NCBI GenBank assembly: GCA_977017575.1
Contig: CDRNVI010000060.1
Span: 124,001-188,000 of the forward strand
DNA: 64,000 bases
Direction: 5' to 3'
DNA from: Paramoeba atlantica
Taxonomy: Eukaryota > Protista > Discosea
Positions 30,056-56,243 of the stretch are shown in pieces. Numbering within the stretch: the first letter of the stretch is position 1; each line of letters starts with the position of its first letter. Made by a program: the position numbers and the translations under genes. Below the pieces are notes generated by a model. That model saw only the letters and a program-made list of their open reading frames with translations. It had not been told where the DNA came from and made no database searches.

Positions 30056-31143
30056 TTGTATCATACAGGTAATCCTGCAGAGATTTATGTGGTGAAAACG
30101 CGCACAAAACGCGTTTTAGTCACCTGTTTCTATCCAGCGTCACCAAGAACGTTCTCCTCCATCCAATTTTGGTCATTGCGGTTTTGATATACTATGAAGC
30201 TCCCTCTCAGAGCCTTCACGGTCATATTGCGCCGGCACTCAGCCACCAGCTCATCATTACCCATAAATAGAGAGTTCAGAGTTCGACCAGCACTGCTTAT
30301 TTTTCCTCTCGCTCCGACTTCGAAAACGAGTAGGAAAGTGCTCGGGTTTGTGAGCTTGCGGGAATGGTAGAGATTTGTGTACTAGGCAGTTTTTCGTTCG
30401 TGTGCGTAGACAAAATTTTCCTCCCAGGGGGCACGTCAATTCTATAATATACTGCTCCCCGTTGGACATTTTCACCCACCCATCCGGTCGCAGCTCGGTG
30501 TCGAGTTCCGTGAGCCACGGAGGGGTAGAGCGAAAGTGAGGGAGGTCAAAGTGACTAGACTGGTCCCTTGGAATTTCTGCACAGAGTTTGCGAGGGCTTG
30601 TAGCACCATGTTATGTCGCAGAGTATATCGTCCTTGCTCGAGTGCTTTTCTACACCCGGAGAGAATATGTCGCGCGGTTCGCGTTTCAGTATCGCAGATG
30701 GGACACTTGTCGCTTGTGTGTGTCGATACGCCCCATTTGCGGAGAGACACTCTAGTGGGGAGTGGCGTTCCTGTGAGTACGGAAGCCGTAAATCGTGATA
30801 GCGATTCGCTTTTGAGATTACATAGGGCGGCAGCGAAGTCCCTCGCGAGGTCTGCTTCCGTCGCTACGCGGAACCATCTTCCCGCAACTAAAGTGCGCCT
30901 TTGCACGGCTTCCGAAAGATGCCTCTCATATTCACTGTCGAGAAGTCGTAGTACGTTATTGTGAGTTGAACGAGGTTCCAACCATGCTCGGTGTACAACA
31001 GTTCGCTTGTCGCGGATTTTGCTACATTTAACCATTTTCTGATTTCATTTGTAGCGCATCGCTGGAGGCGCAGAACGTGGTTAAAAGTCAGACATGAATT
31101 GACAAAAAAAGAGTAGCGAAGGCGGGAGATAATACCATTATTG

Positions 31144-32046
31144 CGGTGGTTGTAAAACTACCGCTCTACACTCGATTATTGAAAAAAAAGTGAACAAAAA
31201 CAGTGAAAATATAAAGAGGAACACAGTAATATAATAGAAGAAAAAAATATAAAAGGGGGCTCCGGTGGACCAAAACTGAAAAAAAAATTTGAAAAAAATG
31301 GGGGGTCCATGGGGGGGGTCCAGAGGGGGGGTCCAGGGGGGGGGGGCATGGTCGAGCAAATTTTTTCGAAAAAATTAGTTTTCGAAAAAAAACCGCAGAA
31401 AGGGTAGCCGGGGTCTTGGCGCGTATTTTCCACCCCCCTACCCGGGGGTGACCCCCCCGCGTATCCGCATGACGGGTCCGCCAAGTTCGGATTTTTTCGG
31501 AAAAATTTTTTTGAAAAAAAATTCAACTTGGCGAAAAAAATGACAAAAAAAATATTTTTCCAAAATCGTTTCCCCTATTGTATTTTGATAGTTTGGGACC
31601 TACACTAGCTTTCTACGCAGTTGTTTTCGCAAGGTATCACTTCTTCGAACCGTGGTGCGCCCCTCAAAATGACACATTTTTGACTAAAAAAGGTGAAAAA
31701 GTATTTTTCGGACCTAAAGGGGCATTTTTGTGTCGAAAGAATGGTATGGTTGGAGTCGTATTCTTTACCGAATACGTTCGGTAGGCTTTCATTCATGCCT
31801 GCGAGTGATTTCCCACGCGCAAATGTCGGATTTAGTGCTCTGAGAGCAAAAATATGCGAAAATGACCCCATTTGTACCCGAAATTCGGCTATTTTTGGCT
31901 ATAATCTTTCCGTTTTCCAGGTTAAATTTTCTTTTTTAGGCTCTTCGTTAAACGCGGCGGTAGTTTTCAACGCGAAGCGCGCAGCATGAGTGACTTCTAA
32001 GTTGAAAGCAACCACCGCGTTTAACGAAGAGCCTAAAAAAGAAAAT
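31144..32046. mobile_element. Non-coding insertion of about 900 bp with hairpin ends (Helentron/HINE-like or foldback)
   Basis: Removing it restores WIY-NNGIISRLRY, homologous to WIHQHAIISRLRF of the intact element. TTG is present on both sides. Left end CGGTGGTT-GTA-AAACTACCG; right end 48-bp arms (31924-31971 and 32001-32048, 45/48 complementary). Confidence 0.75.
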
Positions 32047-35000
32047 TTGTATATCCAGAGTCGGGCGGGTAGGTCGTGGGCGCTGGAAGATATGTTGCGT
32101 AACCAGGTACGGAGTCGATTGCGTAGCTTTAGGAACAGAATTTTACCATGCTGGGCACCAGGTGCGAGAGTCATACCCAGGAATGTGCTACCATTATCGC
32201 ATATTTGAGGAATAGGTGTTGCGTCAATCATTATCTGCGGTCGTCTTGTCATGTAGCCTGAGTCTTGAGTCATTGCCATGTGTTGAATCCAACATTTCTT
32301 TGCGTTCAATTTCATTCCGATGTCGCCTAGAACTTTGACCAGTACGTTCGTGGCAATTTGCATTTCCTTTGGTGTGTTCGTGAGTATACTGAGGTCGTCA
32401 GCAAAGGCCTTCAGAAAGGTTTCCTTTCCATCCCAAGTGATTCCGTACTGTGGGCAACTTGAACGGATGAAGCGAAGAACCAATTCCATTGCCAAGTTGA
32501 ATAAGATCGGCGACAGTGTATCTCCTTGTAATACTCCACGGCCGATCTCGATCGACTTCGTAAGGCCTTCAGCACACTTGATTTGAATAGATGCTCCTTT
32601 ATACTGCGCGCTGATATAGTTAATTAGAATTGGGGAGACACGGGCCCATTTTAGGGATTGTAACAGTACTGCGTGGGGGATAGATCCGAAAGCGTTCTTG
32701 ATATCGAACTGTGCCAGTAAGTATTGCCGTTTGTGACGTCGTTGGTGTTCAAGGAGCTCGCATAAGACTTGTGTATGCTCGACGGTCCCATTCATGTGTG
32801 GTAGAAATCCTTTTTGTACTGATGTATCGAGCGCATGAGAATCCAAGGAATGTTGAAGGATTCGGTGGCTCAGGATTGAATGGAAAAGTTTCCTTATGCA
32901 ACTAGTTAAGCTTATCGGCCGCCAATTCTCCATAGTTGATGTAGGACCTCCTTTGTGTATGAGGCGAGTTACGGCAGATTTCCAGGTGGGGGGGCAAACC
33001 CCGAATTTAAGGATATCATTGAATACTTGAGCTATGTGGACAAAGATAGGGCTACAACGCTTGAGTAGAGCGTTTGATACAGTGTCTGATCCAGGAGCAG
33101 CGCCCGAGCGCTTGGAAGATACAGCAGATGCTATCATTTCGGCGTCAATATCCGACCATGGCATGTCGATGTCAGGCCGTGGTCCGAAGAACTCGGCGGG
33201 GGGTATGCTGTGATTCTCTTCAGGTTTTGACAATGATGCCGCGAAGTTCTCAACCTCTTGAAGAGGTACTGTAGGGTAAGACGTCTCGGGTCCCTGGATT
33301 GGGTCAGTGCGATCTAGGCATTCGCCCGCAGCTGTCCACGGGTTTCTCTGGAACCGAGTTAATGCCCATCGTCGATCGATTTCCCTCTTCTGTAGATTGG
33401 CTTCCTCCACGTACAACTTCAACGCTTTCTCTGCTTCCTTAATTTCTCCTCGCTGCTTGTTTCTCGCGGCCCCCTTCATGAAGGTAAGTGCACGTTTGAG
33501 TTGACGAACATGTGTGCGAAGCCTCTTCGTGGTACGTTCGATGGCCAAGGGCCGTGAGTTTCTTCTGGCTCTGCCAGCTCTGGTTCGCAGGAGAAAGCGG
33601 TGTGTCGGGTCGCTCTCCCGTGCGGCTTCAAAGACGGTTACGGCGAGGATCGCGGATAATGTTTTAGCTTGAGACAGGGCATCCTCATCGTTTCGCGCTG
33701 GGTGCACGTACAAGTTGCAACGTTCCTCAATTTTCGCAATACTATTGCCCCACTGTTCCTCTGTAAAACGTACCAGAACTCGTCCTCCCGTTATTGTGTC
33801 AAATGTTTCGAGAAGATTCTGCAGGTCAGGAATGGGATGAATGGTTGGGGCTGGGGCGTGCTGGGATCGAGGGATCCTCTGCAGTGTCGTGCGTCTGCGA
33901 TTTACTTCCGGTGGGGGAGGTAAAGGTAAAGGCAAAGGCAAAGGCGCGGGTTCTGCTACGGATTCCATACGTGGTACAGAAGGTGAGGAATCCGGTTGCG
34001 TCTCGTGGGCTGGTGGGAAATGTCGTAGAGGGCTGGACAGTGGACTCGTGCGGGGCAGGGAGTTGGTGCGAACTGGTAGGCGGGGTGTCACGACTGGGGC
34101 GGGCGGTTCCGAAGCTTGTGAAGAAACTGCAGCGCGTTCGGCATCACCAAGCGCAGGGAATAGAATATTTTTCGCCGTCCAGCTTATGGCAGAGTATGCG
34201 ATTTCGCCAGCTTTGAGGAGAACTCCTTTTTGACAACATGAATGCTTACATTTGGTTTTGTCTTTACATTTATGTGCGCAATTACGGCGAGGGACTGATT
34301 CAGGGGGGATATTGCCATCTCTACTAACATGAGGTTCCGGGGAAGTGCGTGTATGAGAGAGTTCGTGGTTTACAGCCTGCGTACCGCTCAAGTTTCCTGT
34401 CTCGGATGGCCAGCTAGGGTGATTCTGTGGTGATATTATGCTAGCATCGGCAGGAGATGTCCTCGTAAACAAATTCCTGAGTGACCATATTCGATTCTGA
34501 CCGTTTTCTTCGACGATCATGACCCCTGTCTTGCAACATTGGTGTTTGCACTGAGTTTTATTGCTGCATACATACTTATTGTATGTGCCGACACGGGTGA
34601 TAGTTGGCCGTGTTTGCTGATATTATGGCGGACGACGGCGGATGACCGGTTGGCAGATCCTCATACTGGGCCTCTTCGCTCGGTATGGCCTCTGTCGAGA
34701 CTTGCGGATCGGTTTCTATCGATGTGGACTATGTGACCGTGTTAGTGATGACTCCCCGAGGTGCCGTTCTGGTCGAGGATTTTCAGTAGCACCCGTAATG
34801 AGGACTCCTATTTTGCAGCACTGGTGCAAACAATTTGTCTTGTCGCGGCACGTATGCTTACAGGGCCTTCTGCCGGGAGCTAGTGAACTGTCTATAGCCA
34901 CGGCTTCCGAAGAGGGAGGAGGGACGCTAGGATGCACAGACCTTTCGGGTTTCACTTTGCAACATACGTGAAGGCATGCTGCTTTGTCCCGGCATTTATG

Positions 35001-35681
35001 GGCACAAGGGACACTTGGTTTAGTGGGCGGTAGTTTTGACACCTTGACGGGAGCATCACGGATTCTATATGGCGCGTCGTATGTGACCTCCGAGCAACGT
35101 TGGAGTTGTTCAATGGGTTGGGCCTTACGGGTCACGTGTGATATGCGGAATCGTCGTAAGCCTGGCATGTCACCGCCGCGCAATTTCTTTGTGACGGCTT
35201 TGCCAAGCGCGTTCGAGGAGGAGTATTCTGTGTCAAGCTGCATGTCGGGGTCTGTATAAGCAGAGCTCCAGCTCGTGTGATGAAATGTGCGACTAAGGTT
35301 TCCAATTTCATGGTACTCAACGTACTCGCATGCATCGTTCTCGATGACATCTTGAGTGGTACACGTTTGTACTATCGGACCATCGCTCCTTTTGCTTCCC
35401 GACTTCAGGGTTTTTCCGAGGGAAGCTTCTGCTGTGTGCGTGCTTGAGAAAAACTCTCGTTCGGTAAGGGTGATGGCTGCGGCGTGCGTGTCGGGAAAAT
35501 AGGACCATGAAAAGCCATCAGAGGGGCGGATCTTCACTGGCACCGCACGACTTCGGACGAAGTGAAAGTTCTGGGGGTGTCGCTTCGCGCTGACAGGTCC
35601 TCGAGGGAGGCCGTCGTGCGCGTGGGGAGCTGGGGGTGTGACATTAGAGATCATGCTCCGAAAGATAAGTTTAGTACAAAG

Positions 35682-35711
35682 CAACAAGGTACAGAAACTG
35701 TATCTTTATAG
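35682..35711 (-). other. Relict spliced-leader exon at the 5' end of the retrotransposon
   Basis: Minus strand (CTATA)AAGATACAGTTTCTGTACCTTGTTG, 27 nt upstream of the ATG at 35654. Confidence 0.88.
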
Positions 35712-35726
35712 AAGCCATAATATCTT

Positions 35727-36172
35727 TATAGAAACCATAATTGGGGCGGCAGCACTGTCAAATCAATGGGGCCCAACATATTACAATTGAAAACGTCAAA
35801 TCTTTGCAGCAATCCAGGGAGATGTGCAATAGGTAACACTCCGGTGATCCCCCTTTGTTTTTTTGAAGAGAACGATAGTGTGATGTCCGGCATGTACATC
35901 CATGCAAATGTTCCACAATATTTATCATGCCCGTGGACGTTAAAAAAACCTTGCGGGACTAGTTCAATGGAAATCATTGTTGGTTGCTATTGCACTTTAC
36001 TGCAAACCATTCACGCGCAGTAGTGTTCGTTGTCCATGTCTCTTCTGGATTCGAAATGATTGCTAAAATCATATTTCTGGGGAAGAACGGAACCATTCAC
36101 TTTGGCGGGGTGAGGTAAGGTTGTATCGCTGCTGAGACAAGCTAAAATACAACCCGGAGGATAGAGCGACAT
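35727..36172 (-). pseudogene. 5' part of an LRR gene disrupted by the retrotransposon
   Basis: HPAKVNGSVLPQKYD, TWTTNTTAREWFAVKCN and GPIDLTVLPPQLWFL, with frameshift and stop; paralog of 28840..29553. Confidence 0.8.
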
Positions 36173-36624
36173 AAAGAAGCGAAATAAAGTCTAAGTGTAC
36201 CTCGCTGGCCTGCCTGCTACGGACCGTCCTTACTCTTTCTTTCATCCAAGAATCATGCCATCCGTTTCATGCACAAGCTACAAGCAAGCACAAGCTTGCT
36301 CGTGCACATGCTTGTACATTGTACTTAGCGCAAACAGAGAATTCACCCCGTTCTCCATTTCCCACCTTCCCGTTTTACCCCCTGGCGCTCTTCCCTCCCC
36401 GTTTTTTTTCTCCCAATCCACAGGAGTTTTCCCCCAAACTCATAAGGGAAACCACCTCACAAGGCGTATTCCACCCCACCTTTCCCCTTTTATCCTTTTA
36501 CCCTCCTACATCTACCCCCCCTCCTCCCCCACCCTCCCCCTCTTCCCCCCCCCGCCTCCTCTCCTCCCCCACCGCCCCTCCAGCATCACCCCCACCCCCT
36601 TCTCTCTCTTTCAACTCCCGCCTT

Positions 36625-37302
36625 TCACCCCTGCCCTACCCCTACCCCTACCCCTACCCCTCCCCCTACCCCTCCCCCCTCCTGCCTTCCCCCCAGCCTC
36701 CTCTCCTCCCCCGCCGCCCACTCCGGCATCACCCCCCCCACCGCGGCGTCGAACTCCGGCCGCGTCCCCACCCCCTGCTGGTGCGGGCGGTAGTTCCGCG
36801 GGACCTCCGGGAGCATCGTGCGGCACGCGCGCCCGTTGAGCCGCACGAACGGCGCCCGGGCCTCCTCCCGCGCCGTGCCGTCCACGCCCCGGGGGACGTA
36901 CCCCCGGCGGTAGCTCCCCTGCCAGTTCAGCAGGTGCTGGATGACGTTCGGGGGGACCCCCTGGGCCTTGAGCTCCGTCCGGGTCACCGTCATCAGGTGC
37001 TCCCAGTCCCGGAACAGGGAGGCGTACTCCACGCAGCGCAGGCCGCGGGCGGTGGAGAGGCGGGAGAGGAAGGCTTGGATGTCCGGGACTTCCTCATGGG
37101 GGGGACGTAGGGGGAGGGGGTGCATCTCCTCCGGGGAGACGCTCTCAATGGGGGCGAATTTGCGCGGGTCGGGCATGTAGGAGTAACGGTAGATTTTCGC
37201 GGGCTGGCGGCGGGATTTGAAACGGCGGGAGAGGGTGTAGAGGGTGGAGGGGGAAACGGGGGAGGGGGGGAAAGGGTGGAGAGAAAAGAGGAAAGGTGGC
37301 AT
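36625..37302 (-). CDS. mS41: Probable mitochondrial small-subunit ribosomal protein mS41 (Fyv4/IGR-motif, SAM-like domain)
   Basis: VPDIQAFLSRLSTARGLRCVEYASLFRDWEHLMTVTRTELKAQGVPPNVIQHLLNWQGSYRRG fits the Fyv4/IGR pattern (PDVxxFLxxIGRxxxExxxxFxxWxxLxxxxxxxLKxxGIxxxxRxxILxWxxxFRxG) as recalled; basic N-terminus; upstream polypyrimidine tract. Confidence 0.7.
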   Translation of the reverse strand: MPPFLFSLHPFPPSPVSPSTLYTLSRRFKSRRQPAKIYRYSYMPDPRKFAPIESVSPEEMHPLPLRPPHEEVPDIQAFLSRLSTARGLRCVEYASLFRDWEHLMTVTRTELKAQGVPPNVIQHLLNWQGSYRRGYVPRGVDGTAREEARAPFVRLNGRACRTMLPEVPRNYRPHQQGVGTRPEFDAAVGGVMPEWAAGEERRLGGRQEGGGVGGGVGVGVGVGQG

Positions 37303-38272
37303 GGGGTTGAGGAGGGGGGGGTGTAGGGAGAGAGGTGGAAAGGGGTAGAAAGGGAAGGTAAGGTGGTGTGAAAAATGGTAAAGAAGGAAAATGAATGGTC
37401 AAAGTGAAGGATTGTTTTATAGGTTTTTTAATTTTTTTTTTGTAATATTACGTCTCCAAACCCGAACCTCAAAAAAACGGCAAGTATTTATTTTTCTCGA
37501 AAAAGAAAAATATATTGCTCTTTTAACGGTCTTGATTCTTTGTTTGTCCCCCCAACCCTTACCCAGCTAGCTCACGTCGCGGTGGTACCAGCCTTGGACC
37601 GGGGTCGGCGCAATCTGGGAACTTCCTCTCTGGATTTTTGCTTTACTTACATTGCGCCAATAAAAACCGAAAGAGATCTTACTGAAATATTGACATTACC
37701 GTGAAAACATTAATTAAGAATAACTTAAATTAAGGTAACTTTTTTGCCACATAAATATTACTTTAATGTCCGGTACCTTAATGCTTGGTACCTTAATTAT
37801 TGTTTAGAGCTCATATTTCCGATGTCGATATCTTTCGAAACTTGAACAAAATTCAGTTGAAAGTACCTACAACCAGGTCAGTTAGAATATTTGAAGTTCA
37901 TGCGCAGAATCATAATTCGCAATTAGAAGAGTAAATACTACACCTAAAACTCGCGCACTTGTGCATTTAAGTAAGCAATGTTTGGCCATGTTTAGCCCAA
38001 ATACGTGTAAGGTAGCGATTTCCCTGGTTAGCTAGCGTTTTAAGGATGCCTACCCTGCACGATTTTTGGATGCACGCTGATAGGTTCTAAGTTGAAAATG
38101 ACCACCGCCTTTCACGAAGCGACTAAAAGAGAAATTAATTATTGCGATAGATTTTCGTAAAAATGAGTGACACATACAGGTAATTAATACCTTAATTTCT
38201 GGTACCTTAATTATAATTACCTTAATACCGTTACCCCCCTTAGATATTCTAGTACGCTACTTATCCTCTTTT

Positions 38273-38671
38273 GTGACGAAACCTCTGGGACACGAGAGGA
38301 TAAGTAGCGTACTAGTTTACGGAGAAATACTATCTCTGCACTGTATACTAAAACTCTACTACTACCAAATGCGTCAGCCATTACCATTGCTCATTTTTAG
38401 CGCGAATCAGGTTAGGGGTGCTCTAATGCCTCGAGACCCTTTCGTTGTTGTTACTGCCCCAAAGAATATTACCAGCATCCTTCCGACGGCTCAGCTTCTC
38501 ACGGAGAAGCATGTGGAAAGCGAGCGTGAGCGCAAGTCTCGTGTAGAGCTTACAATAGAGCAGAAGCGTAACATCTGCGCGTCTCTGGATGCAGGAAAAA
38601 CAGAACGACAGGTTGCTCAAGAGTATCACCTTGATCGAAGCACCGTCAGAAAAATATATAAAAATCTATAA
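38273..38671 (+). mobile_element. pogo/Tigger-type transposase remnant (CENP-B N-terminal HTH)
   Basis: RKSRVELTIEQKRNICASLDAGKTERQVAQEYHLDRSTVRKIYK. Confidence 0.75.
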
Positions 38672-39158
38672 AAGAAAGCAAAACTGGGACCATCTGGTGC
38701 GCCTTGGCTGCGTTCTATTAACCAGTATCACCCTCCGCGCCAGAATGCCGCAATATATGAGGCCGGAGCCATGCTGCAAACTCTTCGGGAAGCTCTTACT
38801 GGAGTTACGAAGGTTGTATCATGCTAAAAACTTCCCCCCCTTCGTCCCCCTCCTCTTTGTTGCGCCCCCCTTTCACCCCCAGCACTGCCCTCCTGGCCTC
38901 CCCCCCGAAAAGCACTCTCTGCCCCCTCTTCACCTCCCAACGACGCCTCGTCGCCGCCTTCCTCAGACAGACTGGAGACGAAGGGACAGGAAGAATTTTC
39001 TCCAGAAAGTGCTGATCTGCCTTTTGTACCTTAGCCCTCCCTTCATTACTTAAGCAAATATTTATCGTTAACGTCTCATAATTATCATCTTCGTTTACCC
39101 GCAATCTATCCTTACAGTGAAACAAATTGGTTCATCTTATCAGCTAAAGTGTTGTATA

Positions 39159-39488
39159 CTCCTCCTCTCATTAATTCCTATAAATATAAATCATAACAAA
39201 AAAGAAAATTTATATTTATATTTATAGAAATTAATGAGAATGGCTAGGCAAAAAGTCCTGATTAATGATACTGCCTGATGGAAAAACGCTATTTTTCTGC
39301 GATAAGCTATCGCGGAACGTGAGATCCAAGGCGCTTGTCGGAAGTGAGGGTCAAATCTTTCTGCGGTGTTCTCCCCTCTATCCTAGCATTTCCTGTTTTG
39401 TTTCTTCAAAAGCATAATTTTTTGAAAATCTATAATTTTTTTCTGAAAAATTAGGAATGGCATTTATAGAAATTAATGAGAAGAGGAG
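39159..39488. mobile_element. TA-flanked MITE (CTCCTC family); a smaller related inverted pair lies at about 39508..39646
   Basis: TA|CTCCTCCTCTCATTAATTCCTATAAAT...ATTTATAGAAATTAATGAGAAGAGGAG|TA. Confidence 0.75.
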
Positions 39489-41159: not shown

Positions 41160-41869
41160 TTCTAAAATCCAACAAGATACAAGACCTGTAGGGGGGGGTA
41201 AATGAAGCTGGACAAGGGTGTAGCACTACAACAATAGGACTCGGCAACCAACCTCCACAAGGAGTGGGCGGCGGAACTCCAGAACATTATACTGGGGCCC
41301 TCTACCCCCTCGGGCCTTCTGATCCCCCAGGCCTTGAGGTCGACGAAACTTTTCCCCGGGGCTCCGAAAACCCGGCGGATGCTAACACAGGGGGGCAGAG
41401 GGAGGTCGCCGAGATACTCCCCCCCAGGATGACCGGGAGGATGGTATGATGTGCATATGGGTCCTCGAGGAGTGGGACGTATCCAGGTCCCGGTCCCCTC
41501 GGACTGCCCCCTCGAAGGTTTGTTCCAGGCTGTAGCGATGACTCTAGGCATCCCTACGGATCTCATCTGTCTCTCGCATGGTCCCGGAGTGCCCTACCTC
41601 GAGACGGACAATGATATGGTAGTGGCGGAGAGCATATGGATGTCCCTCATGGTCCTTAATCAGGCGTCTCCTTTCGAGCCCCACATTCGCGTATTCGACG
41701 GCACTGGGCAGGGGTCTTTCACACCCCGACGCACATATCGGGCGACAAAATACCTTTCTTCTTGTGTCAAGCGCTGGGCATCACGCATGATTTTGCAAGT
41801 ACGTGAACCCCTTTCGCAGCTGATGATGGGTCCGTCTGGTGTTGCTTCCTCCCCACTGAGGGGCTCATT
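41160..41869 (+). mobile_element. N-terminal region of a CRE-like element (Ubl-like segment and IRVFDG segment)
   Basis: ORF 41451 GRIQVPVPSD...GIPTDLICL and HIRVFDGTGQGS align with 4539-4660 and AIRVYDGTFQGS (5326 ORF). Left boundary approximate. Confidence 0.65.
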
Positions 41870-41882
41870 GATACAGTTTCTC

Positions 41883-42030
41883 AAAGACACAGTTCCTGTA
41901 CCTTGTTGTACTTTTTCTCCTAGTTCATCTTTTCTCTCTCGGAAACGGACATATTGTCACTATGTTCATGCCCGTTTCCGGATGGCGCTAGGAGAGGAAC
42001 TGTCCCTCTTGTCACAAATTAGGGGTGCGC
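41883..42030 (+). mobile_element. 5' fragment of the SL-headed short element, with a degenerate SL relic at 41883..41908
   Basis: AAAGACACAGTTCCTGTACCTTGTTG, then tactttttctcctAG-ttcatc and the hairpin cggaaacggacat/atgcccgtttccg, homologous to 4734-4830. Confidence 0.78.
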
Positions 42031-42056
42031 CTCCAAAGGCGGAGGTGGCGGAGAAG

Positions 42057-43450: not shown

Positions 43451-43619
43451 ATGTGGCTTTTGGAACCAATACGACATACGTCAAATCTCGCAAAGCACAA
43501 CTACTCAGGGCTCTGAAAATATATTATATATACATATTATATGTACAGTGAACATTAACTGTATACATACAATACAGTGACAGTAACTTAATCGCAGGGA
43601 ACTACCTATCAGCCGCCCA

Positions 43620-45374: not shown

Positions 45375-47006
45375 CCTAGCGCGGTTAGATAATCTGCGTC
45401 GGGAGATGAATAAAAAAACGGACTGCAACCGGACTCCGGCTCACAACGCATCGGATCCCCGAAGAAGAAACGCCGAAGACAAATGCTACGGAGCAATTAG
45501 AAGCGGTAGACGGCTCCATGGAACCGGAACTGGTGATTTCCAAGCAGGAGTAACTGAGTCAGGCAATTGCCGAAGAGGAATTGCTAACAGAATATGCCCA
45601 CGACTGCAAAGTTGCGAAATACTCCAGAATCTGGAGTGCAGATTATATCACACACGGAAACTGCAACACCTATGCACGTTTGTCTTGATTTCCGAGGTGG
45701 GTGCTAGGGGGAAACTCGCTAGCTCCATTCGACCGCTCAAATCTCTTTTTATGGGAGACAACCATCTTGTTTTTGGGTGTTGGAAGGAAATGATGAGAAG
45801 TGCCCAGCGTGGCAGCTTCATCATATTCAAAAAACGCGACTTAAAGACTTGGAACAGTGAACCACGGTTCGCTGAGGTCGCCTAAAGTTAAATTGATAAC
45901 ACGCTTTCTGTGCGCGTGTTCTGGACATTTGTTTTCCTGGATCTATTTATAAACGATCTCTTCACTTTAAGTGTATGACAAATAGATAGATAAACACACG
46001 CCCTGATCTTTAAATGCATACCTTAAGTGCGTATCTTTAAAAGATTGCAAATATAAGTCAAGGAGGACCAGCTTATCGAGTATCTATCGTACAAGACCTA
46101 TCTCCATACATGTACCTACATGTTTCGTATCATACATAATCACCAATCATGCTTCTTGCTCGTACTTACATACGAGTGATATCTGCGTACAACTATGTCG
46201 AGAATTCCAATTCAATTTATTCCATTCTGCGACATCAAAGTCGCCGACAAGCTCCTTGTTATTCGTAAAAAATATTTCCTTCATTGTCTCCGGAAGCTTG
46301 CCAAACAAAAGTCGGGTAAGTTTATTCGAACTGACATCAACAATTGATAACCAGGACTACTTGGAAAGCTTGGCTTCGCACTTAAGGCCTACTATCGGCA
46401 CCTCTGCAAGCAACGTAAAAGTAAACTATGAGAAAGTTCAGCAGCAAGACCCGCTAATGAATGAAAGGTTAAGCGCATCATTTTCTTTATCATGGATTTT
46501 ATTTATATTGTAAGATAACTGAACGGAAAGGAGATAAATAAAGGAAGATAATGGGGGACAGATAACGGGGATCATGAACGCTATAAAACATGATCATAGG
46601 GAACAAGAAAATTCAAAAGTCACACGAAAAAACCGAAAATAATTTATTTTTAACAATAAACGAGCCCCCCCTTTAGGTGGAATAAAGACCTCTCACGCGG
46701 GGCTTCAAAACACTGCTTTTACCAAAGAGGCCCTGAACCTCCTTAACAGGCACCCATTCCTACCTAACACATTGATCCTTTTCAACATCTGATTTTAGGA
46801 ACGCAACGTGGAAAAGATTTATTGCTAGGAAAATGGGAAAAAGAATCATTAGGGATTGTTATACATTAGGGATTGTTGTATCTTGAATGTTCAGTTGAAA
46901 TATATGACATTAGAGACCGCAACGTGCAACTTTGTTTACTGCGGAATAAACCTAGTCCAGAAACAGGGAGAAATCTCGTGGCTTGCAGATCCAGAGGTTA
47001 CGCGTA

Positions 47007-48551
47007 CTGTGACCTCCCCCCTCCTTAATATTGACAGGGGGTATCCCCCCCTTTATTATGGACAAATCCGACCGGGCGCCGCGGAGCGGCATTTTTTTTT
47101 GTCGCATCCATTTTTCTGTTTTTTTGGGTATCTGTAGCTATGTAATTTTCTCAGCTTTCACATAGTTTGTCATGTATAATTCAGACATTTTTCAACCTAA
47201 TGAAAACCGTGGAAGGACCCTTAACCCCTTAGATTAAGGCAACACCCCCAAAGCCACAGGTAGGTGATCCAACAATATTGATTACCAATGAGCGCAATGC
47301 CCACGCTTCTTTAGATATCCACGTAAAGGAGAAAAGGGGACGAATTGAGCTTAATATACGAGAAGCGCGAAAAAAAATGCTTTTTTTGGATTTTCTCTCG
47401 GTAAAAAGAATCCGAGAAAAATACGGAATTTCGCGAAGCGGAATATATGAAATCCGTAGCCACGGTATCAGCTACTTTCAGAAACTCATTGATCGTTCCA
47501 TACGATCAATCGTACCACAGGAATCGTGCTTTTAACGTTCGAGGAGGCGACTACAATGATCCCGCAGCAGTCTGCTACAATAAGTCTGAGGCAATGGAAC
47601 GGGTACACCGCTCCTGCGTTCAAGCCTCCTCGTTATGGTGTCCCCTCACCAGAAATATCGTCATCGACATGATCCGACAAAATACGGGATTGACTTTAAT
47701 TAGTGTTTTGGAAGACACTTATGCGAAGTTCAGACAGTACTATGGAGCTAATGCGGGCTCCACTTGGTAAGCAATCTGTGTAACTTGCTTTTTTTGGTTC
47801 CCGTGGAGAACAAGCTCACACGCAAAAATATCTCAAAAACATGGCGACCATGCGTTCCCGGTACTCTGTCTCATCGTCCTGCCCTCACTGAAGAGCTTCA
47901 CGATGAGCAAATAATTGACAGTCAAGATTGTTTAGGGCAACTAATGCTTCATCCAGACAATGACCGCGGGGACATGGACGCAGAGGGGTGGGATCAGTCA
48001 GTAGCGTACGCTGATACTTTCGAATTGTAAAAGGACTGTTGTTTTATCTTGTTATGATAAGTTTACGTGGATTTTTTCCCGTGAGCTCTTAACGTTGGTC
48101 TTGTTTTTTCCCTTCGTGAACGTAATTTCTTTCTTTCCATCTTTAGTTCATTTGTGTGAAACTTTGTATGAGTAAGAAGTTTGGGCTCGATTTTTACGTT
48201 AGAACATCTACAATTTAACTGAATGGAACCTTTATAGCTACACGGAATATAGAGCTGAATGTTAATTTTCTATTCCTAATTATAGTGTACATCAATAATG
48301 CATATCCTCCATGTGCCCTTCAGCCTTATGAAGAAGTGCCCCTTCACCCTTCATCGACGCCCTCCTCTCCCGCCCTCTTTTTCTGCTCTCCCCGCCCTCG
48401 CTCCTGGACATGAATTTTACAATTTAGATTTTTTGCCGTATTATGAGTAAACGAAGCGGCGCCAAATTTTGTTTTACACCCCTTTCATCACTCCCCCCTT
48501 TATTATGGACAAAAGCCGAAAAAGTCTCCATAATAAAGGGGGGGGGCACAG
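47007..48551 (+). mobile_element. TA-flanked decayed pogo-like DNA transposon
   Basis: TA|CTGTGACCTCCCCCC...GGGGGGGGGCACAG|TA; subterminal cccctttattatggac at both ends; degenerate HTH-like ORF pieces (47278, 47447). Confidence 0.6.
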
Positions 48552-48861
48552 TAAGTGATTAAACATCTCCAAAATGAGCCTACCGCGAACAACACGAAAC
48601 CTTTTCAGACTATGTGGCTACATTAGACATCTATGCACAATTTTAGGTATAGCACCTCGCGAAACGGGAGCCATCACTCGAATAAGTCAGGATAGGGGTA
48701 ATAGTATGTATGTGGAGATTGACAATTATAAGTGCTTTTGGTATCATTTAAAAAACGTGTAATCGACGTATAAAGGGGGGTCGTATAGTATAACGGGGAC
48801 ATCACAGTAATAATTGAGTACACTTTTTCGTTTGTGTGGAAGGCAACTTAGCTTAATATTA

Positions 48862-50062
48862 TTATTTGAAAATTACTTTTGTACCTTGCGTAATGAGGTC
48901 GTCCAATAACTTAGGAAGTATGGAACGGTCAATTTCACCTTCAAGTTCATTATTATCCACGAATAACAGTCGTGTCATTTGTGGTGGGAGCTTATCGAAA
49001 AATACTTTTCCGCTGAAAAGGTTATTCTCGCACTCCAGCACCTCCAACGAAGCGGGTTGATGCCGCAAATCTAGCGTTCCGAAAAATTGATTGTTTGAGT
49101 TGTTCGTTCATGCACTTATAGTGCAGAGATTATGCTCACAAAGTCCGTGCCCGCATACGACGGGTGGATCAAGTGAGGGTTCGCCCTCGCCGGAGGTGTG
49201 CGGGTGCAGAGAGCTGGGGTCCCAGGTGCAGAGAGCTCGGTTGTCATGTGCAGGTGCAGAGAGCCGGATGCGTAATCCCCATATTACAGTTTCGGGGGCA
49301 ATCCGGGTGCAGAGAGCTGCGACAGAGCCGAGGTGCGGAGAGCTTGGCGACCCCCAGGTGCGGAGAGCCGGGAGTCTCGTCGGCGGAGGACACGCCTAGT
49401 GGTCCTCAAGGGAGGCCACCGTGACGCATGGCCTCTTCGGAAAGGTAACTGCGAGAGAAGGGAAAGCCGAGAGAGGGAAGCACACTCACTCCAGGGGAGT
49501 GAGTCGGGAAGGGATGAAGGGGTGGAAGCGCGTCCCATATTAGCCAAGTGACAGAGGGCAAGTTACTTAGATTAACATTACCTGTAAATGCGTTATCCGA
49601 AAGGTCTAATGATACGAAGTTCGCTGGGAATTGACTCAAATCTACCTCTCCCGACAAATCATTCTCCTGGACCCACAGCTCTTGCATATTTTGCGGTAAG
49701 TTAGATAAGTCCACGCCACCTGTAAACGCATTTGCCCCTAATTGGAAAATGCAAAGCGCGGACGGAAGGCTATCCAATTTCACCTCTCCACTAAGCCTAT
49801 TTTCAAACAAATAGCAGTTCTCGAGCGTTCGTGGGAGATAATCGCAGGCTGGGGAACCCGTCATGGGAATCCCCAGCATGCCCTGTCCCACCATTCTCCC
49901 ATAGGGGGACCAATCCATTAGCGTCACACGCTCGCCGTGCTCACAGGCAATACCCTCCCACTCACACGCGGGGGTGTCCGTGTTCCAGCTCGACGGTTTG
50001 AAGAAAGCGTATCCTCGATACTTTGAGTTTTCAGAATGTTTATACGATTTTTTAAAGTCCAA
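48862..50062 (-). pseudogene. LRR gene duplicate split by an SL-SINE insertion
   Basis: Near-identical to 62925..63625 on both sides of the 438-bp insertion at 49099..49536. Confidence 0.9.
49099..49536 (-). mobile_element. 5'-truncated copy of the SL-headed short element
   Basis: Reverse complement matches about 4907-5345 and ends aatctctgcactataagtgcatgaacgaacaac. The empty site is visible in the paralog at about 63160, where 2 bp have been lost. Confidence 0.9.
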
Positions 50063-50373
50063 AATCGAAAGGTAAAAAGGCTTTCCCGTACAGTTTTGGC
50101 GTCATGCTGCACAGTTTCTATAAATATTGTTTTCGTTTTCTAAAATACCAGACTCCCCTACATTAGATGAAAACTGAACCAACCCTTTTGTACTGCTTAA
50201 CCATGTTCAACACTGGGAGCCAACCTTTTGACGAGGAATTTGCATGCAAACAATTTCTCTACATTATCTAACTGTAACTCGTCACTGTAAGAATTGATAT
50301 AGCTACATGTGTACATGTGGAATTTTTGTCCTTATTTGTTTTTTTCTAAAACATACAAAGTTAAAGTACTGCG

Positions 50374-50659
50374 CTACAATACAGTAATTGTAACACATTC
50401 TGGAATTGGCCAAGACTGCACTTCCAAATCGCAGATATTTCCTTTCAAATTCAAATCTTTCATTGTTGCTGGTAAGGCGTCAAATGCTACTTTTCCCGTA
50501 AAAGCGTTGTTCCCAAGGGAAGGTGTACGCATAAACGGCGGAAGGGAGCGCAGAACCAACTCACCATTCAACTTATTACCGGTCAAGTGCAAAACTGTAA
50601 GTTCTTTCGGGAGACAGGTTAAGTTTATACTCCCAACAAAAAGATTTTCATGCAGTATT
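50374..50659 (-). pseudogene. 3' part of the LRR gene disrupted by the intact retrotransposon
   Basis: ILHEN(frameshift)FVGSINLTCLPKELTVLHLTGNKLNGELVLRSLPP. Confidence 0.8.
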
Positions 50660-50740
50660 TATATCTATACAGGGCATTACCTGTAGAGTAATAAAGTCTA
50701 ACAGGACGTACGCATATGACGTCGCCTGCTAGACCATTTG

Positions 50741-53700
50741 CTAACCAAAGCTTTGGTTGTCCCATAAAGGGGATTCCCTTTTCAGCCAGAGTTGAAAGCT
50801 GCTCCGGATCGCCGTTCGGATGACTTCGACACGGCACTTATCTGAGAGTGCCTTGTCACCCAAAAAGAGACGGTTGATGTGACGCAGCGTCGTAGAAGGG
50901 AGACCTCTAGCTCCAACTTCAAAGCATATCAAGTGGCAGTCTGAGTACCTTATCTTTCGTCGGTGTAGAATATTTATGTACTTTTCTACTTTTCGGCAGT
51001 GGGCTTCGTGTACGTTTTCCTCCCAGGGCATCGTCAACTCAACGATAAATTCAGTTCCGTCGTTGAGTTTGACGATTCCATCTGGGCGAAGCTGTGTTTC
51101 CAGGTCGGACCACCATGCGGGTAGTTGACGTAGGTGTGGGAGATCAAAATGTGCCTCTGCGGTATGGGGGGAAGAGAGTATCGCGTTTGCAAAGGTGGAG
51201 AGTACACAATCGTGGCGATATGTGTAACGTCCCTGTTCTAGTGATACCTTGCACGAGGATAAGAGGTGTCGTAATGTTTCCGGTTCTTGTTTACAAATTC
51301 GGCATTGTACTGTATCTGTGCCGTGAATTCCCCATGTCCTCAGCATTGTCCTAGTAGGGAGAGTGTTTTGTACCATTAAAGAAGTTGCGAAGCGGCTAAG
51401 GGAAGTGCTACGTAATCCGTTTATCGCGGCGCTGAAATCTTTCGCCTGTTCTTCCTCGGAGGCTATATCCCACCACTGAATAGCGAACGTTGACCTGCGG
51501 CGTAGTGCGTTGATCATTCGGTCCTCATTAAGCTCAAGAAGAGTTCGTTTTGCGAGATCGCGATCGTCCAGTATGTGTGTGATGTCACATGCTGGTCGAA
51601 TTTGGCCTTTCCTGCGCTTATGTTCTTCAGCCCGTATTCTTTCCTGCAGTGCGGCGGTAACGTTCGGGTCTCGGGACCGCTTCATTTGACAGAGAAGATC
51701 AGCTGTACAGTCCTCCCAGAGTCTGGACAAGCTGCAGATGTTCCATCCACGCTGAGAGTAGATTGCTTCGCTGCATGTAGTTCTAGCCGCATTGATCCAC
51801 CGTTTCAGGGAGTGAGTACACATTTTCTGAAGGCGTAAAATAAAGTTTAGAGTGATACATGGGTGTATAGTAAAGGTGAAGCGTAGCCGAGAGATGATTG
51901 CGTGTTGATGTATCCAAATTTTTGATGGGAGGTCGTGGGCCGACTGGTCAATGTTATGAAGCCATCGCTTCAATAAGGGCCTAACTTTCGTGAAAAGGGC
52001 TCGGGATTGTTGAGAACCGGGGGCAATATTCATGCCAAGAAACGTACTTCCTTCGTCGCATATATGCGGTATAGCTTCGTTCTTGATGAAAATTTGAGGA
52101 CGTCGTGTCATGTAGCCGGGGTGTTCATCATTTTTCTTGGACGCCATGCATTGGACTCTGCACTTTTTGACGTTGATGGAAAGGCCAAGCGAACCCAGTA
52201 CCGTGGATAGTGTTTCAACAGCCAGTTGCATTTCTTTTTCACTATTCGTCAGGACCGTGAGATCGTCGGCGTACGCTTTTAGGAAGCTTTTTGGAAATCC
52301 AGGGAGGTTCAATCCAAATGAGGGAAATGATTTTGCCATGTAACGTAGGGCTAGCTCCATAATCACCAGAAAGAGCGTAGGAGAGAGAGTGTCACCTTGT
52401 AAGACACCTCGTTTAGCTGGGATCGCGCTGGACAGACCTTCGTAACATTTAATGCGGGTACTTGCGTCAGTGTATAAGCATTGGACGTATTTAATAATGT
52501 TTGGGGAGATTCTCGCCCATTCCAGTGCTTCAAAGATGATGTTGCGGGGGACTGAACCAAAGGCGTTACTGAGGTCTAGCTGGGCCATGCAGTAGTTCCA
52601 CTTGTTCTTCCGGTAGTGGCGTAGGAGCTCTGAGAGGGATTGCGTATGTTCGAGAGTACCGTTAATGGCGGGGAGAAAGCCTTTCTGTATCTTGGGGTCA
52701 ATGACAGAGGCTTCAAGTAGGAATTTCGTCATTTTCCGGCTGATGATGGAATGCAGGAGTTTCCCTAGTACGCTAGTCAGGCCGATGGGACGCCAGTTTT
52801 GTGGGTTGTCAGGCTCCCCTTTTTTGTAAATGAGGCGAGTGACGGATATTTTCCATGACGTCGGACATGTGCTGAAGCGCACTAGCGCGTTGAAGACGTT
52901 TGCCATGTGCGTGTGGGAGCTGTGGCATCGCTTTAGAGTCTGGTACGTAATGGAGTCCTGGCCTGGAGCACTGCTGTTTTTCTTTGATGTGAGAGCGTTC
53001 GAAATGTCGATTGAAGCCAGTTCGTCCCAGGTCATTTCTGCCAGAGGACGGTTTCCGAGGACGTCGTGGGGTGGTAAGTGATGCACTGTAGTGGGGTCCG
53101 TAAGTAATGTTGTGAACACACTTTCCACTTTCTGTACATTGCAAGTCGGATAGGCCGGTACACTTTCTGCTTCTGTCCTTTTGTCCAAGGTTTGACTCGC
53201 AGCCGTCCATGGATTGCGGTTGAATTGTTGAAGTGCCCAGCGACTTTCCAGTTCCTGTTTTTGGGCCATGGCTTCTGCGCTGTATATACGTTCCGCCTTT
53301 TTGGTTTCCTTAATCTTTTGTTTCAACGCCATGCGGGGAGCCTTGCCGTGTGTGTATCGCAGCTTCATTTGTAGTTGTTTTACATGTCGAGAGAAGGAAA
53401 AGGCAACTTTTTCGCTTTCTAATGGACGGACTTTCCCCTTTATGTGTCCTCGAGCCGTTCGGATAATGAAACCCTTCCTGGAGTCGACGTCTCGCGCCAC
53501 TTCATATGCCGACACCGCTAGTATTGCACTCAGTAGTTCTGCGTTATGGACGGCGGAGAGTGCGTCGCCAGAGACAGTGAGCAAGGTGTTGCATCTGTGG
53601 AGGGCCCTACGTTCCACCTCGTGCCAGTGCGCATCGGCCAAGTTTATGTTTAACTTGCCCCCCTGGATGTATCGTGCCGTGCGGAAAAGGTACTCCGTCT

Positions 53701-56191
53701 CGTCGAGTGGTCTCGGAGAGGAAGCGGAAGTGGGGGGGTTAAGTTCGGGGTGTTCTTGCTCTTGTCCTGCGTTGGGGCTCCCCTCAGAGTCTCCTTCGAT
53801 TCCCTGATCGAGGGATGGTCCATAGATTTTGCAGCATGGATGGCTGCATTTGAGTTTACTTATGCATCGATGTTGGCATGGGTGCGTCCGCTTCAAGGAG
53901 GAGGCGTGGTCACGCGAAATAATCTCGTATGGTGGAAGTGTTGGGACCATTTGGGGCTTTGATGGCTGTACTTCTTCTTTGTCGTCGGTGCGAAGGAGCA
54001 GAACGATCCGAAACGCCGATAACCCAGGGACCGCTCTCCCGTTCAGTACCTTATTTACCGCTTTACCCATTGAGCTAGGTGATGCGTAGTGGTTGTATAA
54101 TTCCAGGCGGCTGTCGTGAAAAAGAGATACCCAGTTCGCGTGGCGAGAAATGTGACTTGTTGAGTCTACTCTACTAACTTCTAAAAAGTCACACGCTCTC
54201 TTTTCCATAAGTTCGTCTACGGTACACGTTTCTACGACGATGTCGTGTGCTGCACTTTTCCCATTGAGCGCTTTGGACAGGGCGGCTTCAGCCCCCTGGG
54301 GGGAAGGGATACGACTACGCACAAGTTGGCTTACGCATGCTGCATGCACATCCGGGAAATATCTCCATGTGTTGTCGTTGACGAGGCGGAGTTTGACAGG
54401 TTTTGACCGGGACTGGATAAAGTGGAAACGTTGCTTGTGTCGGTTATGGGTTACGGGATGCGTGGGGTCCTGGGGCGGCGGGAGATACTGTGACGGGCTG
54501 TCGGGAGTTTGTGTGGGAATCTGGGGACCCTCGGATTCATCCGAATGTAAATGGGCGTCCAGTTGTGATGGGGGTAAGAGGCTTCCTTGTTCAAGCGGCG
54601 GGCTTTGTATTCGACCTACGCTGTGCGCTTGTTGGAAAACCCAGGATGGGACTTCGTCATCGCCATTCTCATTCCGCGGACTGTGTTGGTGTGCTGGGGA
54701 AGATGAGTCCAAGAGAATGATACTTTCCGGTGCCTTGTTTTTGGGAGTCGGGATGGCTGGTTCCCTGGCAACGGCACGGTCAGCTGTCGTAGTGGTTGTG
54801 TTTAGGGACGGTGTGACGAGATTCTTGGGAAGGGTACATGGGCCGGTGGGTAGAGTATCCTGCCCATCCAGTTTGCTTATCGGTGTGTCAAGCGAAGTCA
54901 ACGGTGTGCCAGTGCGTTTGCAGCAAGGATGGCCGCACCCTGCCTTGTTCTTACATTTATGCTTACAGGGCTCGACACGGTCTGCTTGTTCGGAGGCGGG
55001 GCCTAGGCCTTGCTTGCAACACACGTGCTTACATTGATCTTTACTCTTGCAGATATGCTTGCATACTCTAGTTAAGGCGTGGACCTGAAGTTGTGTTGGA
55101 GATTTAGGTTTGGGGAGGCTTTGGGAGTCCGGAGTTTGACATGGAACGCCTTTGAAAAGTAGGAATTTGGCAAGCGAGCAGGCAGTTGATGCGACGGCAC
55201 GACCGACGGTAACAGTGGGTGATTTTTGATGGGGAGCAACCTCCTTGGGTGGGGGTACATGTAAATCGTGTTCGTCTTTTGGACAGGGTGCTATTGTGTA
55301 CGACAAGCGTTCCTGTCCGGTGCTGCTGTGAGGTCGTACGGTTACCGCCGGGGTTGAGGGAGTGCCGTTAGCGTACGGTTGAGTGCGGCTTGAAAACAGA
55401 TATCGTGTTGCAGCTCGCGCTGCCATGCCAAGTAGGTTGCTTGATTTCGGTACTTTCACATCCTGTGTTACGTGGTCACGGGTGCATGGCGGTGACGTTT
55501 CGTCCCTTTGTCGCGTACTTGGAGCTTCTTTGGGCCCGGATTCTTGACCGCTCGCCGTAGTGCTCGTGAGTTCGTATGTTGTTGGTGTAAGATTACGTTT
55601 GCAACATGGGTGCCCGCAGGTCTGTTTGTTTTTACAGACATGCTTACAGGGTGTGCTACGTTGTACCGGCATTACACTCACAGCCGTGATCACCTTTACG
55701 TCTTCTCTTGCATCCACCGGTGCGTCACTTCTCTTATTGTTGTACGTATCCGGTTTTACTACGCGTACCAGGTGTCGTTTGCAGCATGGGTGTTCACAGT
55801 GAGCTTTGTCCTTGCAGCGGTGTTTGCATTCCGGAACGGTTTGTTGTGTGGTGGGGGGGACGCGGTGAGGGGGAAGTTCGTTTGTGTGAGGAGTGACCAG
55901 GATATGTGGCCGCGTTACACCCCTCTTGCAACAGGGGTGTCCGCAGGTGCTTTTGTCCTTACAAGGATGTTTGCATGGAGCTGGGGGTGCTTCTCCTGTG
56001 TCGCTGGTAAGGGACTCATTGCTCTTTTGGGATATGAGAGCCTGGACGGTTCGGGTAGCAGATTTTGCAACCCTGTCTGTGGGAGTGCCTTTCAGGGACA
56101 GGTTTTTGTTTTGGTTAGACACGTCGCGTGGTCTCTTAGGAGAGTCCTGCGACGCCTGGTGTGTGCCCTTCCCTGGTAGTAAGCAAAACAT
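50741..56191 (-). CDS. Retrotransposon polyprotein: six Cys/His modules, NUMOD1-like segment, reverse transcriptase, CCHC knuckle, restriction-like endonuclease
   Basis: RT motifs NWRPIGL, QKGFLPAINGTLEH, LDLSNAFGSVP, GVLQGDTLSP, YADDL; CRICKQEPETLRHLLSSC; RHD; RPDG...IVELTMPWE...RKVEKY...EVGARG. Confidence 0.95.
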   Translation of the reverse strand: MFCLLPGKGTHQASQDSPKRPRDVSNQNKNLSLKGTPTDRVAKSATRTVQALISQKSNESLTSDTGEAPPAPCKHPCKDKSTCGHPCCKRGVTRPHILVTPHTNELPPHRVPPTTQQTVPECKHRCKDKAHCEHPCCKRHLVRVVKPDTYNNKRSDAPVDAREDVKVITAVSVMPVQRSTPCKHVCKNKQTCGHPCCKRNLTPTTYELTSTTASGQESGPKEAPSTRQRDETSPPCTRDHVTQDVKVPKSSNLLGMAARAATRYLFSSRTQPYANGTPSTPAVTVRPHSSTGQERLSYTIAPCPKDEHDLHVPPPKEVAPHQKSPTVTVGRAVASTACSLAKFLLFKGVPCQTPDSQSLPKPKSPTQLQVHALTRVCKHICKSKDQCKHVCCKQGLGPASEQADRVEPCKHKCKNKAGCGHPCCKRTGTPLTSLDTPISKLDGQDTLPTGPCTLPKNLVTPSLNTTTTTADRAVAREPAIPTPKNKAPESIILLDSSSPAHQHSPRNENGDDEVPSWVFQQAHSVGRIQSPPLEQGSLLPPSQLDAHLHSDESEGPQIPTQTPDSPSQYLPPPQDPTHPVTHNRHKQRFHFIQSRSKPVKLRLVNDNTWRYFPDVHAACVSQLVRSRIPSPQGAEAALSKALNGKSAAHDIVVETCTVDELMEKRACDFLEVSRVDSTSHISRHANWVSLFHDSRLELYNHYASPSSMGKAVNKVLNGRAVPGLSAFRIVLLLRTDDKEEVQPSKPQMVPTLPPYEIISRDHASSLKRTHPCQHRCISKLKCSHPCCKIYGPSLDQGIEGDSEGSPNAGQEQEHPELNPPTSASSPRPLDETEYLFRTARYIQGGKLNINLADAHWHEVERRALHRCNTLLTVSGDALSAVHNAELLSAILAVSAYEVARDVDSRKGFIIRTARGHIKGKVRPLESEKVAFSFSRHVKQLQMKLRYTHGKAPRMALKQKIKETKKAERIYSAEAMAQKQELESRWALQQFNRNPWTAASQTLDKRTEAESVPAYPTCNVQKVESVFTTLLTDPTTVHHLPPHDVLGNRPLAEMTWDELASIDISNALTSKKNSSAPGQDSITYQTLKRCHSSHTHMANVFNALVRFSTCPTSWKISVTRLIYKKGEPDNPQNWRPIGLTSVLGKLLHSIISRKMTKFLLEASVIDPKIQKGFLPAINGTLEHTQSLSELLRHYRKNKWNYCMAQLDLSNAFGSVPRNIIFEALEWARISPNIIKYVQCLYTDASTRIKCYEGLSSAIPAKRGVLQGDTLSPTLFLVIMELALRYMAKSFPSFGLNLPGFPKSFLKAYADDLTVLTNSEKEMQLAVETLSTVLGSLGLSINVKKCRVQCMASKKNDEHPGYMTRRPQIFIKNEAIPHICDEGSTFLGMNIAPGSQQSRALFTKVRPLLKRWLHNIDQSAHDLPSKIWIHQHAIISRLRFTFTIHPCITLNFILRLQKMCTHSLKRWINAARTTCSEAIYSQRGWNICSLSRLWEDCTADLLCQMKRSRDPNVTAALQERIRAEEHKRRKGQIRPACDITHILDDRDLAKRTLLELNEDRMINALRRRSTFAIQWWDIASEEEQAKDFSAAINGLRSTSLSRFATSLMVQNTLPTRTMLRTWGIHGTDTVQCRICKQEPETLRHLLSSCKVSLEQGRYTYRHDCVLSTFANAILSSPHTAEAHFDLPHLRQLPAWWSDLETQLRPDGIVKLNDGTEFIVELTMPWEENVHEAHCRKVEKYINILHRRKIRYSDCHLICFEVGARGLPSTTLRHINRLFLGDKALSDKCRVEVIRTAIRSSFQLWLKRESPLWDNQSFG

Positions 56192-56219
56192 GTCGTTGTA
56201 AAGGGTAGGGAAAAGAAAA

Positions 56220-56237
56220 CAACAAGGTACAGAAACT
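56220..56237 (-). other. Relict spliced-leader exon (3' 18 nt) at the 5' end of the intact retrotransposon
   Basis: Minus strand AGTTTCTGTACCTTGTTG, preceded by aaaga, 28 nt upstream of the ATG. Confidence 0.82.
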
Positions 56238-56243
56238 TTCTTT

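Follow-up and report, generated by a model that had tools for sequence, protein, structure and literature searches.

We analysed a 64,000-nucleotide window of the Paramoeba atlantica genome (assembly GCA_977017575.1, contig CDRNVI010000060.1, positions 124,001 to 188,000 of the forward strand), in which three leucine-rich repeat (LRR) genes are each broken by one retroelement. With a probability of roughly 0.85, these elements are site-specific R2-type non-LTR (long terminal repeat) retrotransposons with a restriction-like endonuclease (RLE), accompanied by a short interspersed element (SINE), itself non-autonomous, that uses their machinery, and their preferred target is the DNA of the host's 23-residue LRR. 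Site-specific targeting is favoured by enrichment in LRR genes and a single phase within the repeat, both beyond an AT-matched background, and by sense-only orientation. LRR targeting is a strong preference of relaxed specificity, with approximately 44% of copies on target, and not an absolute rule.

The LRR genes of the window form an array that lies entirely on the minus strand, from approximately 1.1 to 63.4 kb, and contains 54 recognisable 23-residue units. Units are numbered here as L1-x-x-L4-x-L6-x-x-N9-x-F11-x-G13...L20-P21. All three retroelements are inserted in sense with the minus-strand genes: an intact long interspersed element (LINE-A), a decayed copy of a second family (LINE-C) and a short SINE copy. 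The interrupted genes, the elements and one uninterrupted paralogue are as follows.

56244..56744, minus strand: LRR gene 1, 5′ part; ATG at 56744; stops at codon 4 (TTG), adjoining the LINE-A head; LRR score of this 5′ flank 16.4

50660..56243, minus strand: LINE-A, an intact R2-like (RLE) non-LTR retrotransposon; head derived from the spliced leader (SL) at 56243-56220; 3′ hairpin ending at 50660

50656..50659, minus strand: 3′ tail AATA of LINE-A, variable and AT-rich, with LRR codon 6 directly after it

50370..50655, minus strand: LRR gene 1, 3′ part; codon 6 (CTG) at 50655-50653, Asn codon at 50646-50644; sense-frame LRR score 68.7

48900..50062, minus strand: LRR gene 2, split by the SINE, with codon 5 (ATA + T) on the 5′ side and codon 7 (TCA) on the 3′ side; LRRNT_2-like N-terminus

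49099..49536, minus strand: leaderless SINE copy of 438 nt; GGGACG start, hairpin TGCACT/AGTGCA, tail ACGAACAAC

35729..36110, minus strand: LRR gene 3, 5′ part; the last codon is codon 4 (CTA, 35731-35729)

30052..35728, minus strand: LINE-C, decayed copy of a second putative RLE family; broken open reading frames (ORFs) 35687-34716, 34520-31899 and 31035-30472; 3′ hairpin; tail ACAATATA

29990..30051, minus strand: LRR gene 3, 3′ part; codon 6 (TTT) at 30051-30049, Asn codon at 30042-30040; LRR score 28.4

62757..63626, minus strand: empty site, the uninterrupted paralogue of LRR gene 2, with 97% and 94.6% identity on the two sides

LINE-A and LINE-C are placed alike. Their 5′ flanks both end at codon 4, and on the 3′ side a short family-specific tail is followed directly by codon 6. 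In LRR gene 2, the flank on the 3′ side of the SINE resumes with codon 7 at 49098-49096 and reaches the Asn codon at 49092-49090. The distance from the 3′ junction downstream to the conserved Asn codon is 9 nt for LINE-A, 9 nt for LINE-C and 6 nt for the SINE. An initial annotation of the window, made from the sequence without database searches, had reported three junctions at one phase of LRR genes, all in sense and upstream of the Asn codon; the pattern held on both counts and the positions were right to within 1–3 nt. Comparison of the filled SINE site with the one empty site (63164/63161) shows that TA at 63163-63162 was lost (2 bp) and that there is no target-site duplication. At the 5′ junction of LINE-C (35740-35701) a 20-nt piece, with 12 nt from the LRR target and 8 nt from the SL head, is duplicated in tandem, which looks like a junction-repair scar.

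Further copies were recovered via their 3′ ends from the 45.7-Mb assembly. The last 301 nt of LINE-A gave 17 genomic matches, 14 of them at 99–100% identity, whilst 11 LINE-C 3′ ends and 68 SINE copies with the exact 15-nt 3′ anchor were found. Flanks at least 80% identical were merged as duplicates and the remaining junctions were counted as independent, which left 71 3′ junctions (14 LINE-A, 50 SINE and 7 LINE-C). An LRR profile derived from 98 units of the host was used to score the flanks in all six frames. The sense-frame LRR score reached at least 10 bits in 24 of the 71 flanks, and no antisense frame scored above 2.5 bits. Five further LRR events were identified by their 5′ flank (L026, L039, L075, L025a and L019a) and two by weak but readable units (L019b and L030/L036). 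Thus 31 of 71 insertions lie in LRR genes (LINE-A 5, LINE-C 3, SINE 23), every one of them in sense (31/31, P = 5e-10).

The LRR content of the genome was estimated from counts of a motif of 26 places, GG-N7-GAYYT-N7-YTNCC (encoding G-x-x-D-L-x-x-L-P), with its reversed form as control, and not from a full annotation. The motif has 3041 genomic matches compared with 105 for the control. One match stands for 130–170 nt of LRR units, as calibrated on 358 kb of local sequence, and LRR units amount to approximately 0.4–0.5 Mb, or roughly 1% of the genome. At roughly 1%, the binomial probability of 31 in 71 lies below 1e-28; even if the LRR fraction is assumed to be 3% it is 2e-28, and at 10% it is 2e-13. 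The preference for a protein-coding multigene family, which the initial annotation had proposed from the window alone, is borne out by this enrichment, by the uniform orientation and by the 26 events in phase described below. Moreover, its chance estimate of about 0.02 for the shared phase gives way to far stronger figures once the genome-wide copies are added.

In 26 of 26 registrable LRR events the junction matches the start of codon 6 to within approximately 3 nt, directly after the family tail. The chance that 26 random positions would fall in one 7-nt window of a 69-nt unit is approximately 1e-24. The conserved anchor of LINE-A ends 2–4 nt before codon 6, with one case at 14 nt where the AT tail is longer; the tails of its genomic copies are at, ata, aata and attataattaatta. 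The corresponding distance is 7–8 nt for LINE-C and 6–11 nt for the SINE, whose tail in off-target copies measures 7–9 nt. On the 5′ side, the host sequence ends after codon 4 or 5 wherever the 5′ end lies in the fetched DNA, with an occasional larger loss (L011 is without codons 2–5). Since the host sequence stops there while the tail precedes codon 6, the two cuts are only a few bases apart. Head-to-tail pile-ups of two or three elements inside one LRR target site (L019/L023 and L025) are as expected from repeated hits on the same site. Among LRR units the targeted ones are unexceptional, with no differing position except those forced by the selection of the reference set. Downstream of its Asn codon, the terminal unit that hosts L026 has no F-x-G, D-L or L-P; this single case hints that upstream sequence may matter.

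LINE-A contains a single ORF (56191-50741) of 1816 amino acids. Pfam places RVT_1 at residues 1123–1355 (E = 1e-28), zf-RVT also matches, and the closest relatives of solved structure in PDB are R2 retrotransposon proteins (E = 7e-31). Alignment with the R2 protein 9nl3 pairs the knuckle CRIC...H...C with CRHC...H...C (CCHC), and the motifs of the PD-(D/E)xK endonuclease as RPD/KPD, IVELT/VVDVT and KVEKY/KVRKY. A search for an apurinic/apyrimidinic endonuclease (APE) gave no Exo_endo_phos or other Pfam match in residues 1–1000, even at E ≤ 5, which is negative evidence only. Because of the RVT_1 and zf-RVT matches, the R2 proteins as best relatives, the aligned endonuclease motifs and the lack of a detectable APE domain, LINE-A is classed as an R2-type element bearing a predicted RLE. 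Six Cys/His modules of the form CxHxC-x5-CxHxCC are spread over the N-terminal part (56191-53200, residues ~70–1000); they have no match in Pfam (E ≤ 5) or the protein Atlas. A search of a plasmid collection with LINE-A gave no match and is uninformative.

The initial annotation had listed a decayed element at 30055-35727 beside the intact one. LINE-C shares 44% amino-acid identity with LINE-A across the reverse transcriptase (RT) and gives no blastn match, and by these comparisons it is a separate family, not a decayed LINE-A copy. Its ORF is split into at least three pieces, its SL head runs from 35700 (35700-35682) and its tail ends at 30052. By tblastn, LINE-C carries Cys/His modules related to those of LINE-A.

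Full SINE copies are approximately 0.56–0.6 kb long and open with sequence copied from the SL's 3′ part, after which comes a leader of approximately 137 nt that contains a perfect hairpin. To judge from its size, the SINE is probably non-coding. The initial annotation was correct about the site of the copy in LRR gene 2 but not about its nature, as this is a leaderless version of an SL-headed element of about 0.6 kb. We also considered the SINE as the 3′ end of a longer ‘LINE-B’, given upstream sequence common to most copies; this was rejected, the upstream piece being the SINE's own SL-headed leader. Four independent copies (window position 49536, L021, L051 and L055) begin at the same GGGACG base, which in full copies sits after a pyrimidine-rich, acceptor-like site (...GAAGCAG). 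This start suggests a discrete processed RNA, either trans-spliced with its leader lost or produced by cleavage. Neither the window as a whole nor the SINE region gave a ribozyme or any other family in Rfam scans.

Each of the three elements has a 6-bp hairpin 8–15 nt from its 3′ end (minus strand; 50656-50715, 30052-30110 and 49098-49160). The stem sequences differ (ACAGG.../UGCAGG/UGCACU), and the hairpins are consistent with a common RT recognition structure kept by compensatory change. The hairpin of the SINE lies equally far from the 3′ end as those of LINE-A and LINE-C, the stem sequence is different, and the codon-6 target is common to all three.

The heads of LINE-A, LINE-C and the SINE are variably truncated copies of the 3′ 18–36 nt of the SL, the full form of which is roughly AATCTTTAACGATAAAGATACAGTTTCTGTACCTTGTTG. 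A 19-nt SL core occurs approximately 780 times in the genome. Many of these cores stand directly after the poly(A) tails of other repeats, and RNA that carries the leader is therefore the template of numerous retroposon families. A literature search for the core string returned nothing. Of the first 100 SL-core sites, at least 17 have in common an upstream sequence, TAGTTGGGCTTCGC...ACAATAAT, that borders on a leader of nearly full length; they may represent genuine SL RNA genes or a further repeat family.

Two further features lie near the start of the window.

~4709-5345, plus strand: second SINE copy of the window, full and SL-headed; off target, on the other strand than the LRR genes

2646-3644, plus strand: ORF of a decayed CRE-like RT remnant (region 2646-5345); RVT_1 E = 2e-9; followed by the SINE copy at ~4709-5345

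The initial annotation had counted two SINE copies in CRE elements; the window holds only this one other copy, beside the CRE-like remnant. LINE-A is 20% identical to the remnant. The LRR genes themselves have N-termini (49406-50062 and 56355-56744, both minus strand) with a plant-type LRRNT_2-like cysteine motif (Pfam E = 1.4e-4) of the form C-x-W-x-G-[VI]-x-C, after which come the 23-residue repeats.

Several points weigh against LRR targeting as we describe it. Forty of the 71 insertions (~56%) lie outside LRR genes, and a position weight matrix finds the off-target junctions no more LRR-like than control offsets (P = 0.53). One LRR event (L027/L028) looks off phase or has a 15-nt deletion, the positions of 5′ junctions are blurred through overlap with the SL head, and there is a single empty site for comparison with the pre-insertion state. 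The genomic LRR fraction rests on a motif count, not a full annotation. Lastly, we infer both the bases recognised and the domain that would read them, and the Cys/His modules are without a Pfam match.

Other explanations would dispense with recognition of the repeat. One is that the endonuclease simply prefers TA-rich sites, that copies accumulate in LRR genes because these tolerate insertions, and that the phase marks the AT-rich part of the repeat; the initial annotation had itself raised a preference of this kind as a caveat. The tails of LINE-A and LINE-C are indeed AT-rich, their flanks begin with A or T, and Ile (ATA/ATT) is frequent at codon 5. However, across 162 distinct units AT content peaks at codons 9–11 (0.77), whereas the boundary between codons 5 and 6 has 0.58 and ranks 38th of 69. 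AT-matched control positions were drawn in 200 replicates from the LRR-rich window itself, whose minus strand is 5.8% LRR, a conservative choice. Per 71 positions, they gave a mean of 2.0 in LRR units and 0.15 at codon 6 ± 3 nt, with maxima of 7 and 1, against at least 26 observed in phase. Moreover, the SINE, which has an A/C-rich tail and off-target sites that are not AT-rich, uses the same codon 5|6 boundary. We reject the caveat and give this explanation next to no weight. It is also very improbable that the common phase was inherited, with one or a few old insertions carried through the family as LRR genes underwent duplication or gene conversion. Segmental duplicates with common flanks do exist (L003/L007, W/L080 and L073/L074/L048), but the 31 LRR events are those left after merging of flanks at the 80% threshold. 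LINE-A copies are 98.7–99.7% identical over their last 300 nt compared with 42–58% for the in-register LRR flanks, and because the copies are near-identical while the flanks have diverged, the insertions are independent. The same site is, in addition, common to three element families with different tails, and the 97%-identical empty paralogue indicates that the SINE insertion is recent.

The site could instead be set by base pairing and not by a protein, with the complementary DNA, the SL head or the 3′ tail annealing to LRR DNA, or with LRR codons mimicking the SL core. In keeping with this, 2–6 nt at 5′ junctions are often ambiguous and could belong to either LRR codon 5 or the SL (for example AAG or ATA). 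Yet the primed (3′) junction is identical for the tails AATA, CAATATA and TAAAACA, and the targeted units have in common only generic LRR bases. By eye, LRR flanks are found at only ~3–5 of the first 100 SL-core sites, all families included, and therefore the SL head does not itself bring elements to LRR genes. The particular proposal that the codons of N-x-F-S-G act as an SL-core mimic was rejected, since the junction spacing is ~11 nt compared with 17 nt and other SL-headed families are not in LRR genes. We regard pairing of any of these kinds as improbable. A last possibility is that LRR arrays are fragile or prone to recombination and that elements are captured at breaks without an endonuclease. 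The tandem pile-ups at single LRR sites might be taken in this sense, but they are equally produced by repeated use of one target site, and break capture would not yield a near-nucleotide-precise phase or a strict sense orientation; it hardly merits belief.

In target-primed reverse transcription the 3′ junction marks the first nick, which is on the antisense strand; here that position is the start of codon 6 ± 3 nt. The element protein may read the codon-periodic conserved bases of the LRR, namely the middle T of Leu codons, AAY of Asn, TTY, GG, GAY-YTN and YTN-CCN, and the most likely reader would be the six Cys/His modules arrayed in its N-terminal part. The RLE would then nick, and the RT would prime on the nick from RNA held by the conserved 3′ hairpin. 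A sense position within a dispensable multicopy family may provide transcription for the element at low cost to the host, as ribosomal DNA does for R2. A more far-reaching version, in which a new modular Cys/His array reads a degenerate codon-periodic signature that exists only through conservation of the protein repeat, and in which hits, pile-ups and breaks drive turnover and diversification of the LRR family so that the two form a partnership and the elements are more than parasites, is speculative and, in our estimation, rather unlikely.

Site-specific LINEs are a natural model for programmable RNA-templated gene insertion. Here the target is constant only via selection on a protein motif; an element using it has to cope with synonymous changes at two bases in every three and yet place its nick to within ~3 nt. 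Thousands of variant sites thus form a natural series on which the target-reading rules of an R2-type protein can be tested directly. A coding gene family can, moreover, serve as a ‘safe haven’. There are approximately 6,000–7,000 LRR units as landing sites, so the elements likely shape pseudogene formation and recombination in the LRR family.

Among known systems, the elements are most readily compared with R2 and the other site-specific RLE groups (R4, NeSL, Utopia and CRE). With these they share the order of a single ORF, in which the RT is followed by a CCHC knuckle and a predicted PD-(D/E)xK endonuclease. Like R2-type elements, they have a fixed orientation, a precise 3′ junction, a multicopy safe-haven target and a 3′ RNA hairpin near the priming end. 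R2Bm makes a small target deletion, similar to the 2-bp loss at the one empty site here. The differences lie in the target and in the ends of the element. The LRR is a repeat within protein-coding DNA whose conservation is chiefly that of its amino acids, and the DNA target is therefore degenerate; only the ~44% of copies given above are on target; the 5′ end carries a copy of the SL with no ribozyme found by Rfam; and the N-terminus has the six CxHxC-x5-CxHxCC modules in place of a typed zinc-finger/Myb domain. The trypanosomatid elements CRE1/CRE2, SLACS and CZAR are likewise of the RLE type with SL sequence at the element boundary. In those elements the SL exon is the target, whereas here SL sequence forms the 5′ head of the element itself, truncated to varying degrees, and LRR codons or unrelated DNA make up the flanks. 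Insertion inside the SL exon of SL RNA genes, a trait of the CRE clade, is accordingly not seen in the elements described here.

The nearest likeness in target is to ingi and RIME of the kinetoplastid Trypanosoma brucei, again a LINE and a SINE that hit one position in a protein-coding multigene family. These have an APE-type endonuclease and produce a 12-bp target duplication. The Paramoeba elements, in contrast, are of the predicted RLE type without duplication, and their target recurs in every repeat unit of a gene. PMC7563717, citing Bringaud et al. 2002, describes ingi and RIME as inserted repeatedly at one position of the RHS multigene family, with one site per RHS gene, and as creating pseudogenes there. 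All targets listed in a review of site-specific elements (PMC4640811) are non-coding or RNA-gene repeats, and in our literature searches neither LRRs nor any other coding repeat turned up as a reported target. The initial annotation had called a coding target unusual; this is supported for a coding repeat, whilst the RHS hot spot (PMC7563717) is a partial precedent. The elements are, on this comparison, of a known kind, and their target, LRR coding DNA, belongs to a new class.

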